Below are positions 330-7,805 of a stretch of DNA of 7,805 bases, piece by piece (the first letter of the stretch is position 1; each line of letters opens with the position of its first letter). The DNA comes from Octopus sinensis. Lineage: Eukaryota. The stretch lies in assembly GCF_006345805.1 (NCBI RefSeq), contig NW_021828765.1:1-7805 (forward strand), written 5' to 3'. Under the pieces are notes generated by a model that worked only from the letters and a program-made list of their open reading frames with translations, did no database searches and was not told the origin of the DNA. Both the position numbers and the translations under genes were made by a program.

Positions 330-515
330 TTACGATAAATAGATTCTATCCTGTTTTGTAGAGGTTGATGCTTGAAGAATAAAAGAATTTTTATTGAAAT
401 GCTATTTCAACATGGGTTCAAAAATGAAAAATCTACATACATGCATTGAATGGTTTCATTCATGCTGGATTTGCAACTAAAAAACAGTTATCTGTTTCGT
501 CGATATACACAAACC
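330..515 (+). pseudogene. Degenerate non-LTR retrotransposon reverse transcriptase, 5' part
   Basis: QHGFKNEKST at 408-437 resembles the QxGFRxxRST motif. FIHAGFATKK and KTVICFVDIHK (to 513) resemble the region leading into DxxKAFD. Several stops and frameshifts; left boundary approximate. Confidence 0.7.
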
Positions 516-549
516 GGTACTTTTGTCGAAGTGGTCGCAGTTTTTTTAG
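516..549 (+). repeat. Merlin TIR (left)
   Basis: GGTACTTTTGTCGAAGTGGTCGCAGTTTTTTTAG, the exact reverse complement of 1547-1580. Confidence 0.97.
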
Positions 550-778
550 AAGATAATTAAAATTAATTAATTTTTTTAGTGAAAAATAGATTATTTAATT
601 TATAACCCTCTATCAATAATTTAAATGGTTATTAAAATTATTTAAAAATTTATTTAACCAATTTAGTCATTTTTAGTACGCGGCATCCAAATTCCAGGAC
701 TGTAGAAGGAATTTATGTCTTTTACAATCTGTGCAAAAGATTCCTTATAGTTCTGTATTTGTTTTCGCCACATAAATT

Positions 779-804
779 CTGAAAAAATAACTAACTAAAA
801 AAAC
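779..804 (-). other. 26-nt spliceosomal intron (Merlin intron 3)
   Basis: GTTTTTTTAGTTAGTTATTTTTTCAG; removal gives SYFA-E-FMWRK. Confidence 0.85.
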
Positions 805-932
805 CTGCGAAATAAGATCCCAGATGATGTCTTACAGCTCCTCTTTGAGCTTTATTCTTGCATTTTGCACTTCCCCACATTCGTTCTACTGTCTGGGTGT
901 GCACTCCCGTCGTTGGATCCACAAAGAATTTT

Positions 933-955
933 CTGAATATATTATATTTCCTTAC
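933..955 (-). other. 23-nt spliceosomal intron (Merlin intron 2)
   Basis: GTAAGGAAATATAATATATTCAG; removal eliminates an in-frame TAA and gives TVNHK-KFFVDP. Confidence 0.88.
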
Positions 956-1140
956 TTATGGTTAACGGTTTCGTGCGTCCACACAGACTTCACGTAAAAA
1001 CATAGCCCAATCGACATATGTATGTTCACCCCAATTGTATTCGTGATGAAGCCATTTGAAGGTATGCCTATCGTAACTCCATAAGTATATGTAGGCGATG
1101 ACATCCTCAAATGGCAATCTACAATTCTCTAACCAGGTAT

Positions 1141-1166
1141 CTAGAATTATTTGAGAGAAATTATAC
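1141..1166 (-). other. 26-nt spliceosomal intron (Merlin intron 1)
   Basis: GTATAATTTCTCTCAAATAATTCTAG; removal joins SIKK-D-TWLEN and extends the 76-aa ORF at 1147..1377. Confidence 0.88.
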
Positions 1167-1546
1167 CTTTTTTAATAGAACATTGGACTCTACAACCAAC
1201 TCTTGAGCATTTCCAATTGAGCTTCGGTCCCAAGACTAATTCCATCTGATGTCCCTTCGGACATATACGTGATTTTGAAAGGATATCCACATTTTGCAGA
1301 AAATGCACTGCATCCTCCTTACTTATTGGGAGCTGTCGGAATTTGATGTTGCATAAGTCCACAACAGAATTTTCCATGTGACCTATAGTGCCAGTTTATA
1401 TCAATATTAGGTACATGCTCGCCATAATATTAAAAAAATTAGAAAATAAATAGTAAAAAATTTAATAATATTTTAAATTATTGATAGAGCGACTTAAATA
1501 AATATAATATATTCCACCTCAAAAATTATTAGATTTTTTAAAAGGC

Positions 1547-1580
1547 CTAAAAAAACTGCGACCACTTCGACAAAAGTACC
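1547..1580 (-). repeat. Merlin TIR (right)
   Basis: Exact inverted copy of 516-549. Confidence 0.97.
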
Positions 1581-2330
1581 CACAAAACCTTGTAACTCAG
1601 TTTCAAGGAAGATTCTATCAAGGAAAATATTTTAAGCAGAGTTTCCAGGGAAGCTCAAAATATGGATCACCAACTTCCTCAGTGGACGAAGAGGCAGGGT
1701 GTGAATCGGAAAACTAAAGTCTATTTAACGTCTCCTGCCCAGCGAAGTATATCAGGGTTCTCCCTTATCTCTTGCTTTATTCGATCTCTTCTTGGAAGAC
1801 CTTCCGCCTCTGGTGCAAGATGATGATATTTTACTGTCTTACGCGAATGACATTGTATTGGCTTCACGGGATCTAAACATCCAGGAGACCAGTGAAAGGA
1901 TCCAATTTAACCTGGATCGGCTCAATGCCTGGTTAATGGATAATCGGTTTGCTACGAATGTTAAGAAGTCATTTATGTCTCTTTTCAATCTAATAAAAGA
2001 TTGGAAGAAAGACAGTTTCTTTAAAGCTGAACAAAGTCATCATATGTTTCAACAGAATTTAGAGGATCATAGGAGTGACTCTTGATATTCATCTCTGCTT
2101 TTCTCCACATGTAGATAGCATATTTCTGAAATGTAAAAAGGAAATGAATGTGTTAAAAAACTTATTGGCAACATGTAAGAATGATTCTTACCCGGTCTTA
2201 GCAAACACATATCATCAATAAATCGAACTATGCATTTTCTACGGTTGTGTTGTATGAGGATTGGTTTTATCTTGGACAAACAGGAGAAAAATCAAGAAGC
2301 AGATTAACCGAACGTTGGTTGTATGGAAAC
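1581..2330 (+). pseudogene. Degenerate non-LTR retrotransposon ORF2 (RT core and downstream region), 3' part
   Basis: WITNFLSGR; SEVYQGSPLS (from GVPQGSxLS); YAND at the YADD position; LDRLNAWLMDN..NVKKS; then in a shifted frame IGVTLD..HVDSI..K and FYGCVV*G. Includes ORF 1792..2085. Right boundary approximate. Confidence 0.85.
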
Positions 2331-2636
2331 GGACGTTCCGGATCGGATCCTCTGAAGGATCTGATTAATCTGAACTCTAGAATGCCGGTCTATGTTGCTA
2401 AAAAACTGACTGGCCGCCGGTGCGGTCTTTTGTGGGCTCGTGGGGAAATCATCGAGCGAAGATGAGGTCGCTCGTGAAATACATCGGGATCACGTGATTA
2501 ATTTGTTCTGTTTTTACCGTGGCTTTGGTGTTAAAAGTATTATTTTATTATTATCTGTTCTATTTTAAATTAGGTTGGAATTTTATAATAATTTTAAATT
2601 TAAACCTAAATTTATCTGATAACCTAAATATTATTA

Positions 2637-2660
2637 CAGTACGACCCCGGTTTGGGGCAG
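2637..2660 (+). repeat. pogo TIR (left)
   Basis: CAGTACGACCCCGGTTTGGGGCAG, the exact reverse complement of 5041-5064. Confidence 0.97.
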
Positions 2661-2674
2661 CATTTTTATCATAG

Positions 2675-2711
2675 TGCCCCAAAAAGCGGGGGTGCCCCAA
2701 AATGCGAGGGT
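2675..2711 (+). repeat. Subterminal 37-bp direct repeat with TGCCCC units, copy 1
   Basis: 34/37 identical to 4988-5024, in the same orientation. Confidence 0.9.
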
Positions 2712-3249
2712 AAAGATTTTTTGTTTTTATTTTCTCCTCAATAGATTTTTATTGCATTTTAGACTATAAATTAAAATTATTTAATATTAATAAAAATTCT
2801 AACATAGTCCTTTCTTAATAAAATTTAAAAATTTTAATAAATCCAACAAAAAATACTATTAAAAGTAATCAGTAATTTTCTCACCGAATTGGTTTTTTTT
2901 CAGTTCTCCTGATAGGTTTTTTCTAAATTCGTAGTAGATTTTCAAAAATTGTGGACATGTACTGAAAATATTATCTTCTAGAGCAGGGGTTCTCAACCTT
3001 TTTAGCTCAAGGGCCAAATCGATAATTAAGATTAGCTTCGCGGGCCGCACAAAAAATATTTTATATATTTTTATATTTTCCAAGCCGGTAACTCGCTTGC
3101 AATTCGAAGTGCAGCCACTGTTGATGCGTAATGAGTTTTTGGACTCTTTTTTTTCTTTTTTTAATTTCCATTTCCTTTATAAAGAAATAAAAGCTAAAAA
3201 ATCTACAAAAGGCGTTGTAACTAAAAAGAAAGTATTATTTGTTTATTCA

Positions 3250-3570
3250 GTTTTTGAAATCCGGAATAAGTGAAGTCGAAGAAGTTCGTAAAAGCTGACG
3301 TAAAATTTTTCGAATTTGTCTTGAGGAATTAATTCGTAAAAATTAATAATGGACGCATTTTTGAACAATGCCGCCAGTTCTATATCATGTTGTAAATTAA
3401 TGAGTTCTAGTTAAAACTTTGCAGGCGCATCCTTAATTTCCACGCTGAATGGAGTTGCGAATATTTTCATTAAAAGAAGGAATTCTTTAAAATTCTAAAA
3501 ATTAAATTTATATAAATGTACCCCAAAACGTGCTTCAAATTGATTAATTAAATCACCAATTATGGATATG
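3250..3570 (-). pseudogene. Remnant of a Buster/Charlie-type hAT transposase C-terminal region
   Basis: LINQFEARFG|NFKEF..IFATPFSVEIKDAPAKF*LELINLQHDIEL..F..INFY, then after an apparent deletion LRTSSTSLIPDF, which resembles the extreme C-terminus of this family. Confidence 0.75.
3495..3521 (-). other. 27-nt spliceosomal intron in the hAT transposase remnant
   Basis: GTACATTTATATAAATTTAATTTTTAG; removal deletes an in-frame TAG and gives FEARFG-NFKE, matching the RFxDF motif. Confidence 0.75.
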
Positions 3571-4987
3571 TTTAACCTTAAGAATAAATAATTAAATTTT
3601 AACTTTATTAAAAAAATATAAAAGTTAGTTACTCTAAAGGGGCCGCAAAAAAAATTCTGGGGGCCACATGCGGCCCCGGGGCCGCATTTGAGAACCGCTG
3701 TTCTAGAGAATTCACGATGTTTATGATTTCTTTAATTGATGATTTTTTAGATTCATATCCATCATAAGTAATTTTGTCCTCAATAATATCTGTCGAATCC
3801 ATTGAAATAACATCTGAAATCACGTCATCTATTAATTCTTCGTCCAACTGTACATTATCCGAAATTTTTGATCTGTTTTCATTTATTTTCTGCCAGCAAT
3901 TAATTCGTTGTCTCTGACTCATTTTCCATGCCTCCCCGACAACTGTAATGACTTGTCTAAGATTGACATTATTCAAATTCAAATCAGAAAGCTGTTCTTT
4001 TTCAATATAAGAGTAAAATCAATCAGTTTATTGAAATAGAGGGACTTGAAGGATTTTATTATTCCCATATCTAGGGGTTGAATTAAAGCGGTCGTATTTT
4101 TGGGAAGAAAAGTAAATAAACATTGGAATATTCTGTATTTCTGTGACAGCTCGCATTATCCAGTATTAAGACATTTTTCTCTTTTCATTGATCATATCTT
4201 GATTTACTTTCCATAACCATTTCCCAAAATTATCACTAGTCATCCACGAATTTTTTGATGCAGCATATAGTACTCCTCCGTGATCCTCAGCGTTAAAATT
4301 TTTTAAACACCTAGGAGATTTGAATTTTCCAATTAATAGAGGTTTTAACTTTTCACCAAGTGCATTACAACAAAGGAGAAGGGTAACTTTCTCTTTGCTC
4401 ATTTTAATTCCATTGCATTTGTCATTAAATTGAACAAAAGATTTCGACGGCGTTCGCTTTATGTATAAAGCTGTTTCATCACAGTTAAAAATATTTTCAC
4501 TTCCTACAGTTTCCAAACAGTTGTCATAATCAGCAAAAAAATTGGAAACCGTAGAAAGGTCAGATGAATTCTTTTCTCCACTTATAGTTTTAAATAGCAA
4601 TCGTGTCTTTTCTTGAACCCGTCTAGCCATCCATTTGATGCCTTAAATGATTCATAATTTATCTTTTAGATAATTTTTTTTGCAATCAGTTTTAAGATAG
4701 TTCCAGAAATTGGAAGAAATTCATCTCTCAGACGTAGAAAAGTTTCAAAAACTAATCTATCTAATTCATTATTTGGATCATGTGATTCCTTGATTCTATC
4801 GGATTCAGTTAATCCCGCGTCAAAATAATAAACAAATTTTGTTTAATGCGAGATAGTACCTGTAGTATTAATTATTAATTAATAATTAATAAATAAACTA
4901 ACATTTTTTAATTAATAATTAAATAAGTGCCCCAAACCGGGTCATCAAAATAAAAATAGAATGAAAAATTTACTGTTTTTCAAAAAC

Positions 4988-5047
4988 TGCCCCTAAAAGC
5001 GGGGGTGCCCCAAAACCCGAGGGTGCCCCACCCATGGGGTCTGCCCC
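4988..5047 (+). repeat. Subterminal array of TGCCCC-headed units with 18-bp period
   Basis: TGCCCC starts at 4988, 5006, 5024 and 5042; an extra TIR-like copy GTGCCCCAAACCGGG lies at 4927-4941. Confidence 0.9.
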
Positions 5048-5064
5048 AAACCGGGGTCGTACTG
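5041..5064 (-). repeat. pogo TIR (right)
   Basis: Exact inverted copy of 2637-2660. Confidence 0.97.
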
Positions 5065-5410
5065 TATACTAAGTCTCCAATGTCCATTTGTTTTATGCTT
5101 TTCAGAATCTTTTAAATCTTTGGTAATTTGCAGACACCAGATTAACATGCCTAATCAACGTGCATCAAATAAGCCAAGAATTTGTCTTTTAAGAGACGAT
5201 ACAAACATAATTTCAATAAAGCGACAGAACCAATATTTTAAATTTGAGAATAAAAAGGATATTTATAAAAAAAGTCCATTTAAAAACATTAAAAATGAGT
5301 CATCTTTTACTAGTTAATAAACGACAATAGTGAAGAATCGGGTTTGAAAAAGCCCTGATTGTCAAAGCAAAGAATATTTGACAAATAACAAAAATATGTT
5401 GTTTTCTAAG

Positions 5411-5915
5411 CTAATTATATATCAAATAGTAGAAAGTAACAATCGAGTAATTGTTGTAAAGATTAATTAGTTTTAGAATTTTTCGTAGAATTTTAGATTC
5501 TACCCTCATCCAAAATATCGCCGTCCGTTGTTGTATTAATTTGATCTTTTTTGTGCCTGATTTTTGTGATTTTGACACTGCATTATTGCTAAAATTCATT
5601 TACCTGGATATTGGTAAACTTTACTTCCTCTGGCTTTTTTCAATATTTTTTCTGAATATTCAGAACTCCTTTCTACTTCTATATTAAATCCACTTTCACA
5701 TTTCATAATGAGTTTATGAATATCTTTGTAACTTTTATTTTTAACATTTATATTGTCAATTTTTAAATGACGTCTTTAACCTGTAAACCAGCTTTTTCAG
5801 CAGGCGAATTGGGAATTATCTCATTTATTATGTGAGTTTTTTGACCCGGAATCGAATCCAAGATGATTCCGTACATAAAGTATGGGCGTTTCAATACTAT
5901 TCTGCGTTGATCCAT
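5411..5915 (-). CDS. PDZ-domain protein (host gene or recent pseudogene); one apparent 1-nt frameshift; 3' end uncertain
   Basis: ATG at 5915: MDQRRIVLKRPYFMYGIILDSIPGQKTHIINEIIPNSPAEKAGLQVKDVI, then with +1 nt at 5765-5767: LKIDNINVKNKSYKDIHKLIMKCESGFNIEVER. PxSPAxxAGLxxxDxI is a PDZ hallmark. A putative 26-nt intron at 5578-5603 joins it to ORF 5411..5599. Confidence 0.75.
5578..5603 (-). other. Putative 26-nt intron in the PDZ gene
   Basis: GTAAATGAATTTTAGCAATAATGCAG; removal deletes an in-frame TGA and opens into the 5411..5599 frame. No conserved motif spans the junction to confirm it. Confidence 0.55.
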
Positions 5916-6204
5916 TTCAGTAAAAGTTTAAAATTAATTCAACAACTTAAAAAATAACTTTAAATTTATTGTCTTCATTAATAAAAAAATAAATTACCTA
6001 AAATTTACAAAGACTGTCTATTTTTCAATCAGCCAAAAAAATGTTTTTCTCGATAGAATTTAATTTTACAAATCCTTTCAATACACAACAGAATTTATAT
6101 TAGTTTGAGTCTTTAGCTGTTGTTAACTAATCAACTTTTTAAAAACCAGGAATAACGACAAGTTGCTTCCCCGTTACCTACCTTTCTCTATAAAAGATTT
6201 ATTG

Positions 6205-6350
6205 AGCGTCCAGCAATAGCTGGATGATACCTTTAAGGTTCCATTGTCGTTTGGAATTGAAAATAAACGCTGGAAAACTCAGAAAATGTAAGATTGCCTC
6301 TTTCCTCTTCCAGAAGTGAACATATTAATTCTTAGGCGTACAAATGCAAA
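6205..6350 (+). pseudogene. Possible highly decayed non-LTR RT fragment
   Basis: Weak similarity, needing compensating indels: QQ*LD..SFGIEINAGKTQKM and FLGV, versus LQxxLD..FGLxINxxKTxxM..YLG. Confidence 0.25.
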
Positions 6351-6839
6351 AGAAGCATCCGACAAGGATATCTCCAAAATTTTTTTTCCTGTGGTCTTGG
6401 TGTTAAAATTTTTTATTCTTTTGTTTCTAATCCAAGAGATCATTAAAGGAATATTCATTCCAACCAATCTAGGTGAGCAATCAATTTTTAAGGTGTAATT
6501 CTAAGTAGGGTATCGTTAGTTTTTCTAAAGTACAAATATATTGAGAATCATACTTATAACTGCTATGGTACTACCTTATTGACATTACAGAAATATTGTG
6601 ATTTAAGTAAATATCTTAAGTTGCTATTTGGTATAACACAATTGAGGAGATGATTTCATAAATCTTATGAATCAGGGGAAACGGAGCAACTTTTAGCTTG
6701 TGTTTTGACAGAATTATCATAGGTACGAGATAGTGAATTAGAAAATTTAATTATTGCCGGCGAAAAAATGATTGTAAAAATGAGATACACGAAAAAATAT
6801 CAATGTTGGAACGACTGTGCTTTTAAGGTCTCAGCATCA

Positions 6840-6990
6840 AATTAATTTATATACAGGACAACGATGCCAATGTTCGGCAGTATCCAATGTATGGTGGACT
6901 TGATGTTGACAAGTATATTGTTGTCAAGCAAACAATTGATCTCTATGTTATCGAAAAAAAGACGGAGAATGGTTATATGGAAATCATAAT
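6840..6990 (-). pseudogene. Possible decayed C-terminal CCHC zinc knuckle of a LINE ORF2
   Basis: CQHQVHHTLDTAEHWHRCPVY (6911-6849) resembles CxxC..DTxEH..CPxY; flanked by stops. Confidence 0.25.
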
Positions 6991-7805
6991 TCTTGTAACG
7001 CGTTTTAACTTTATTCATAGTAACTATCTAGGTTTCATTTTGGAATTCGATCTAATTCTTATGAATTAGCTATTAATCTGTTATCAGACACTACATTTTT
7101 TACTTTCCCATTTTCTTTATATAAGAATTCAAACATAAACTGTTACTATTTAATTATGCCTCATTCTTTATTTTATTTTGGATCATTCCTTATTTAAAAT
7201 ATGCCGATCGTCTATTATCATAAATCGATTTGTTTTTTCCTATAAGTTTGTATTTTTTGATTACTTTATTTATACATATTTTTAATAAATTTAAAATAAA
7301 AATAATATTGAATAAAAAGATTCTCTTAAATACTATCATCTTTGTTATTTATCACGTTGGATATAATTCTAATGAGTCCTTATAGTAACTAATTTTTTAG
7401 CGACTGAAAAAATGCAAGACTTCTGGGCAGATACTCTAAATACTAAAAAAATTGATTCATTGTCACTTGAAAATTGCAGCCATGTATTTTAAAAATATAT
7501 TAATCTTAAAAAATTTATCAGTAAAATAACTATAAATTAGTTATTACTGAAATCCCTTCCAAAAATGGACCTTCTCGATGTAACTGTCGCTGTGCCATTT
7601 TATGAAGATGATAAAAAATTTTGCAACTTGGGAGTAACTGTAGATACATGCGGATTCTACGTCAAAGTCAAGTTCTACGTTATTTCCAATACTTTCCATT
7701 ACGAATGGGTGCATTTGCTTGACCTTGATTTGGGATTTTTGGACCCTCATTTGGGCATCGACTCAAATTGAGGTTCAAATCTAGTTTAAAGTTGACACCT
7801 GAAGA

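Follow-up and report, generated by a model that had tools for sequence, protein, structure and literature searches.

The window analysed here is the whole stretch of 7,805 nucleotides that forms positions 1-7,805 of contig NW_021828765.1 (GCF_006345805.1). On its minus strand it holds a Merlin-superfamily DNA transposon copy with the remains of a transposase gene that is divided by three very short GT..AG segments (Table 1). The window was compared by blastn with two further stretches of GCA_006345805.1, 44 kb in all, that are referred to below as L002 (VCDQ01002911.1, 95228-116428) and L003 (VCDQ01013367.1, 68392-91662). A fuller copy of the same family on L003 is called copy A, and exons and introns are numbered as in the complete family gene.

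Table 1. Features of the Merlin copy and its insertion site in the window (a slash marks a junction or a split codon)
Feature	Position	Strand	Basis
Whole element: internally deleted, non-autonomous Merlin-superfamily DNA transposon copy, 1065 bp	516-1580	-	Perfect 34-bp inverted repeats and target duplication
5' terminal inverted repeat GGTACTTTTGTCGAAGTGGTCGCAGTTTTTTTAG, starts 5'-GG	1547-1580	-	34/34 against opposite end
3' terminal inverted repeat	516-549	-	34/34 against opposite end
Target-site duplication, right copy CACAAAACC	1581-1589	+	Reverse-transcriptase frame reads through once the element and these 9 bases are taken out
Target-site duplication, left copy CACAAACC	508-515	+	Flank comparison
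Decayed non-LTR reverse-transcriptase gene, the insertion target	1590-2470, other part ~380-515	+	Pfam RVT_1, 27 bits; frame rejoined across empty site
Exon 1 from the ATG at 1375-1377 (70 codons and 1 further base), encoding the N-terminal Cys/His DNA-binding region	1167-1377	-	Aligns to Merlin transposase N-termini
Family intron 1 GTATAATTTCTCTCAAATAATTCTAG, 26 nt, GT..AG, phase 1, splits G/AT (Asp71)	1141-1166	-	Best of 30 GT..AG pairs (34.7 bits, runner-up 18.0)
Exon 2, 3' side cut by the internal deletion	973-1140	-	Identical to L003 5835-6002
Deletion junction GACGCAC/GAAACCG, out of frame	972-973	-	Alignment with L003 copy A
Premature TAA in the ATG frame (...REVCVDARNR*)	962-964	-	With intron 1 spliced out, the predicted product is an N-terminal fragment of 129 aa
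End of family exon 4 (..HETVNHK)	956-972	-	Translation and copy A alignment
Family intron 4 GTAAGGAAATATAATATATTCAG, 23 nt, GT..AG, phase 2, splits AA/A (Lys)	933-955	-	Best of 13 GT..AG pairs (53.1 bits, runner-up 38.8)
Family exon 5 (KFFVDPTTGVHTQTVERMWGSAK...SYFA), catalytic Glu inside	805-932	-	DDE_Tnp_IS1595 profile 97-152; homologue alignment
Family intron 5 GTTTTTTTAGTTAGTTATTTTTTCAG, 26 nt, GT..AG, phase 1, splits G/AA (Glu)	779-804	-	Best of 14 GT..AG pairs (37.6 bits, runner-up 26.4)
Last exon (EFMWRKQ...PRTKND), stop TAA at 663-665	663-778	-	Translation

The window also contains features outside the Merlin copy. At ~2631-5067 on the minus strand lies a frameshifted pogo/Tigger element (HTH_Tnp_Tc5 and DDE_1 domains) that matches L002 and L003 copies at 98% identity, carries ~717 extra bases at 2984-3700 relative to the L002 copy and has G-rich repeat ends (GGGGTGCCCCAAA...) at ~2632-2711 and ~4988-5067; an exact-sequence look-up of its 154-aa ORF returned no record. 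A six-frame Pfam scan of 5150-7805 for host genes gave a PDZ domain only, which belongs to a minus-strand ORF at 5600-5915 (PDZ_6, E 2e-11) whose frame has to be corrected by 1 base near 5765-5772. This ORF, whose peptide has no homologues among 5.8 billion proteins, could belong to a rapidly evolving host gene in which an assembly indel obscures the frame, or it could be a pseudogene. A 15-nt GT..AG segment that follows it (GTAAATGAATTTTAG) was considered as an intron and rejected, being too short for the host and having nothing in its support.

The Merlin superfamily of eukaryotic DNA transposons, reportedly described by Feschotte in 2004, is related to bacterial IS1595/IS1016 elements. Its hallmarks include a target duplication of 8-9 bp and inverted repeats of 24-462 bp that begin 5'-GG (PMC8101967), and the window element has perfect 34-bp repeats beginning GGTAC together with a duplication (CACAAACC/CACAAAACC) that can be read either as 9 bp with one homopolymer A fewer at the left or as 8 bp with one mismatch. 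When the element and 9 bases are taken out, the reverse-transcriptase frame reads through the empty site (...FVDIHKPCNSVSRKILSRKIF...KLKIWITNFLSGRRGRV...). The repeat in the flanks and the restored frame thus show that the element is a transposon that inserted into a non-LTR retrotransposon, now decayed. Its 3' terminal repeat recurs on L003 at 6755-6778, 6821-6848 and 20185-20212. The assignment to Merlin/IS1595-type elements made by the sequence-only reading is borne out by the Pfam profile DDE_Tnp_IS1595. The window copy matches only profile positions 97-152, the final third of the domain, at 25.6 bits, and falls just below the 27-bit cut-off because of its internal deletion; a composite family protein, described below, scores 64.3 bits over profile positions 14-151, which is above the cut-off.

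That reading had also proposed three GT-AG introns on the minus strand, and all three segments are located exactly where it had placed them. Excision of the segments joins SIKK/DTWLE, VNHK/KFFVDP and SYFA/EFMWR, so that the frame is restored inside conserved Merlin motifs and the spliced pieces are colinear with Merlin transposases at all three junctions. It had named homologous residues aligned to the segments as evidence that would speak against introns; in alignments with 10-13 Merlin transposases of ~293 aa the junctions show neither a residue nor a gap. As a control, all GT..AG pairs of 15-60 nt at each site were enumerated (30, 13 and 14 pairs), those giving stop-free products were retained, and the products were scored with an HMM made from homologues only as a guard against cherry-picking. 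At each site the proposed segment scored highest, by the differences given in Table 1. GC content is 19-23% in the introns against 40% in the exons, and an unspliced RNA would meet a stop codon six codons into intron 1. The segments thus behave as spliceosomal introns of the U2 type, with GT..AG ends and with a frame that is colinear with intronless homologues once they are removed. We infer from these properties of the DNA that they are actually spliced. The spliced product of this Merlin family was not found among 5.8 billion proteins, and an exact-sequence look-up of the 76-aa exon 1 read-through ORF gave no record.

What was described as a transposase gene is, in the window, a gene that lacks ~95 codons including those for the first two catalytic Asp residues and that is frameshifted. 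Relative to L003 copy A, ~329 bp (94-98 codons plus two introns) are missing, with breakpoints at GACGCAC/TTGTT... and ...ACACAC/GAACCG that share a (C)AC microhomology. The missing stretch encodes VEVDES and YSDCW, which carry the first two catalytic Asp, and the alignment with homologues likewise shows that the block between REVCV and VNHK, with VEIDES and SD.W..Y, is absent. Across the deletion, ...REVCVDA is followed by HETVNHK in a different frame. Of the D-D-E triad the window copy retains only the Glu (in TVERMW), while copy A has all three residues. Given the missing Asp residues and the frameshift, the window copy is therefore a non-autonomous remnant.

The same Merlin family is present on L003 in three pieces, namely copy A at 5745-6778 (97-99% identity), a 100% identical piece at 19955-20213 and an additional end at 6790-6854. 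Copy A lacks its 5' part and has 1-2-nt deletions, and it retains the stretch that is deleted from the window copy (...ALVKDLTAKI/GGPGMIVEVDESMF.KRKNNSGRVLPKQWVFGGICR...GSIIYSDCWK/G...). Within this stretch are two additional GT..AG segments of 21 nt (gtattattatgtttatttcag) and 26 nt (gttagcattatttgattaacatttag). Intron 1 is 24 nt long in copy A, and intron 4 is identical there. The segments of copy A and of the window together therefore give a family gene with five introns of 21-26 nt. The three introns proposed for the window hold up, but the family total is five, with two more in the part that the window copy has lost. The search for fuller copies that had been recommended yielded copy A and this intron count, and gave no intact full-length copy of the family on the window, L002 or L003. 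A 309-aa composite of the family protein, in which X marks three sites of single-base deletion in copy A, aligns without gaps to intronless Merlin transposases, shares 47% identity with the relative P0001 and contains D145, D206 and E245.

Comparison of window positions 516-1300 with L003 5745-6778 shows approximately ten indels of 1-2 nt, several of them in homopolymer runs, and zero substitutions. This pattern suggests that the differences between copies are uncorrected long-read assembly indels and that the family is very young and otherwise identical. Since the differences are confined to indels, apparent frameshifts on these contigs are not to be read as decay. At L003 6755-6854 the 3' end of copy A is followed by AATAAG, by a second 65-bp copy of that end and again by AATAA; this doubled end stems either from a duplication at this site or from a misassembly.

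A second Merlin family is present on the minus strand of L002 at ~9447-8620, where it is itself internally deleted; its inverted ends were looked for and none could be delimited. The two families are 43.8% identical over 217 shared columns, and the second is no nearer to the window family than each is to outside relatives. A neighbour-joining tree pairs them with a bootstrap value of only 52%. The second family contains GT..AG segments of 28, 23, 31 and 23 nt, all in phase 1, that occupy the same codons and phases as introns 1, 2, 3 and 5 of the window family, so that four of the five positions are common to both. The sequences of these introns are unrelated. Intron 1 has a 28-nt counterpart and intron 5 a 23-nt counterpart at the same position and phase. 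At the VNHK/K site the second family has no intron, and the segment at 933-955 is specific to the window family. When position is conserved while sequence and length diverge, comparison classically points to real introns, and among the three in the window this pattern is shown by 1141-1166 and 779-804. As four of five positions are common to a family with only 44% identity, the introns are old when measured against the separation of the two families.

The organism that carries this element was approached through the transposons that the window shares with L002 and L003. A stitched translation of the window pogo remnant is 91-93% identical to proteins named tigger transposable element-derived protein 6-like (Octopus sinensis), which are encoded on the contigs VCDQ01002911.1 and VCDQ01013367.1 from which L002 and L003 are taken. 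At the DNA level the pogo remnant and short repeats of the window are 96-99.7% identical to copies on L002 and L003 (98% for pogo and 99.7% for one short repeat), and the window Merlin is 97-100% identical to the L003 copies. Two kb from Merlin copy A, at L003 8726-9950, is a MARK/Par-1 kinase gene in which removal of ten GT..AG segments (23, 28, 25, 24, 24, 26, 24, 24, 24 and 24 nt) gives one ORF that covers the full Pkinase profile and aligns without gaps to human MARK3 residues 11-323 (E 8e-144). Additionally, removal of seven segments of 25-31 nt from a gene at L002 4880-6470 yields a match to human topoisomerase I (TOP1, E 1e-191). The expectation of a host with ultra-short introns is thus supported by 17 introns of 23-31 nt in linked host genes, a range that fits the Merlin introns of both families (21-26 nt and 23-31 nt). 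Introns of this length class are a feature of dicyemid gene architecture, a subject for which PMC6543705 cites work by Ogino from 2010.

Among animals, introns below 30 nt have been reported only in myxobolids and in the dicyemid Dicyema japonicum (PMC13644364). Dicyemid genes have a median intron of 27 nt, the value given for Dicyema sp. (PMC6543705), with two thirds of introns below 30 nt, weak splice signals and GT..AG ends only (PMC6543705, PMC6736024, PMC13644364). The published cases are host genes, in which respect they differ from the window Merlin, although its introns share the length class and the splice signals reduced to GT..AG. D. japonicum was isolated from the kidneys of O. sinensis and has a genome that consists of 49% repeats (PMC6736024). 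The simplest reading would therefore be that the window and the "octopus" stretches L002 and L003 are dicyemid DNA. The dicyemid assignment is based on intron size, the octopus label of the contigs and the literature, and not on a named dicyemid sequence. In the window no host gene has a demonstrable micro-intron, the frameshifted PDZ ORF without homologues being the only candidate, and the host assignment consequently rests on transposon identity with L002 and L003.

At least two large contigs of GCA_006345805.1 (116 kb and 500 kb) have housekeeping genes that contain the 17 introns of 23-31 nt, and judging from this gene structure they are probably DNA of the dicyemid parasite. By eye, a tetraspanin-like exon with a CCG motif is also present at L003 1916-2191, and a GMP-reductase/IMPDH-like ORF and a retroviral-type integrase fragment at L002 19311-19757 and 3252-3554. 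We found no literature on dicyemid contamination of the octopus assembly. RefSeq proteins named O. sinensis "tigger ... protein 6-like" come from these contigs with parasite-type introns, which matters to users of this assembly for work on transposons or horizontal transfer. In practice, the presence of parasite contigs in a public octopus assembly may outweigh the transposon finding.

There is a slim chance that the element is a genuine part of the octopus genome, either as one of its own transposons or through parasite-to-host transfer, and that its 21-26-nt introns are unspliceable there. In octopus genes, introns are much longer. The nearest copies lie on contigs that are deposited and annotated as Octopus sinensis, and the window has no host gene that would prove its own origin; however, both octopus-labelled contigs carry genes, the MARK kinase and topoisomerase I, whose introns belong to the size class that dicyemids and myxobolids alone among animals are known to possess, and the PDZ peptide of the window has zero matches in the protein database that was searched.

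A comparably low probability attaches to a different tiny-intron host, for example a myxobolid myxozoan or a ciliate such as Paramecium, whose introns are ~25 nt long. Merlin-like genes are known in ciliates (PMC8101967), but a ciliate genetic code is excluded as the Merlin ORF specifies its nine Gln exclusively by CAA or CAG and has no in-frame TAA or TAG; the PDZ reading, if read through, contains an in-frame TGA. For these reasons a ciliate host (Paramecium, Stentor) was rejected. The median intron length is 22-27 nt in myxobolids, and the GC content of Henneguya is 29%, but myxozoans parasitise fish and annelids (PMC13644364). The contigs related to the window were produced by octopus sequencing, and D. 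japonicum is the known resident of that octopus (PMC6736024). The myxozoan lead, which had come from PMC13644364, was overtaken by the 98% pogo match to "Octopus sinensis" contigs with micro-intron housekeeping genes.

It is scarcely credible that the segments are small insertions or decay in a dead pseudogene with a frame restored by chance: the window copy is dead in any case from its deletion and frameshift and the case for introns comes from DNA comparisons, but all three segments are AT-rich GT..AG segments of the host size class and the best local choice, two of the three and both from the lost stretch have counterparts at identical codon and phase in a 44%-identical family with unrelated intron sequences and different lengths, and the copies are otherwise free of substitutions, which leaves no time for decay.

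We therefore regard it as highly probable that 516-1580 is a young, internally deleted Merlin copy in an animal with ~25-nt introns, most probably a dicyemid (Dicyema, the kidney parasite of O. sinensis). Comparison of the intron positions with those of other Merlins, a check that had been proposed from the sequence, showed that four of five are common to the second family and that four other relatives are intronless over the Merlin part. An uninterrupted Merlin frame is present in the DNA of P0001, P0006, Branchiostoma P0068 and Araneus P0008 (residues 77-297). P0001 is on a 1048-bp Logan contig with its own inverted ends, and P0006 is likewise from a Logan contig. Within this thin sampling of four intronless relatives, the introns look derived within the dicyemid lineage. 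They could have been gained at their present size, or gained longer and then shrunk alongside the introns of the host. Conserved positions in two families would also argue for long vertical residence of Merlin in dicyemids.

Transposase genes with host-type introns are common knowledge. In the Drosophila P element, which has three introns, the third is spliced only in the germline, and there are truncated KP-type repressors. Like Merlin the P element is cut-and-paste, its transposase depends on host splicing, and deleted copies can encode N-terminal DNA-binding fragments; regulated splicing and repressor activity are features of the P element, which serves as no more than an analogy for "splicing-based control". 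A precedent for transposase genes with tiny introns of the host type is provided by the germline Tc1/mariner elements Sardine, Thon and Anchois of Paramecium, whose ORFs, including the DDE transposase, have predicted introns in a tiny-intron host (PMC3464196). These elements differ in belonging to another superfamily and in having a ciliate host with a variant genetic code, while the window family is in an animal, is denser in introns (five in ~930 nt of coding sequence) and has positions that are kept between two divergent families. With other Merlins the window family shares the DDE_Tnp_IS1595 domain, 5'-GG inverted ends within the 24-462 bp range, the 8-9-bp target duplication and a single transposase of ~300 aa with an N-terminal Cys/His region. 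In contrast to the four relatives examined, its coding sequence is interrupted by five introns, each of 21-26 nt. A eukaryote-wide survey of Merlin does not mention introns (PMC8101967), a text search of two dicyemid genome papers (PMC6736024, PMC6543705) for transposons gave no match, and we found no literature on intron-bearing Merlin elements or on the gene structure of dicyemid transposons. The window element is accordingly an unsurprising case of a mobile element that matches the gene structure of its host.

A Merlin DDE transposase binds the inverted ends of the element, cuts and pastes it, and duplicates 8-9 bp of the target. In the window family, production of a ~309-aa transposase that has the D-D-E triad would require the host spliceosome to remove all five introns, which are 21-26 nt long. 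Because the gene is split and the unspliced RNA has a stop in intron 1, a full-length gene would yield transposase only after removal of the five micro-introns. The loss of ~329 bp, which eliminated exon 3 and a portion of exon 4 together with two introns and two catalytic residues, probably occurred by microhomology-mediated repair. The window copy cannot make transposase owing to this deletion and the frameshift, while with its perfect 34-bp ends it could still be moved in trans by a full-length copy; such mobilisation we infer from the ends. If transcribed and spliced once, it would give at most the 129-aa N-terminal fragment, which might bind the ends without cutting, as suggested by analogy with the truncated repressors of the P element.

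The earlier suggestion that such introns could form a barrier to horizontal transfer, or may allow splicing-based control of transposition, is plausible. It is possible, and we propose it only tentatively as the less probable course of events, that a Merlin lineage acquired four to five introns inside dicyemids and then diversified vertically, and that its need for a spliceosome able to remove introns of 21-31 nt acts as a "host lock". If such a lock exists, a transposon of the parasite would be kept from working in its cephalopod host despite the intimate contact of the two organisms. In a bolder version, Merlin copies may nevertheless be present inside the octopus genome. The gene structure of this DNA transposon matches an extreme feature of its host, the shortest introns known in animals, and the system also offers a simple test of tiny introns as a barrier to the spread of transposons between parasite and host.
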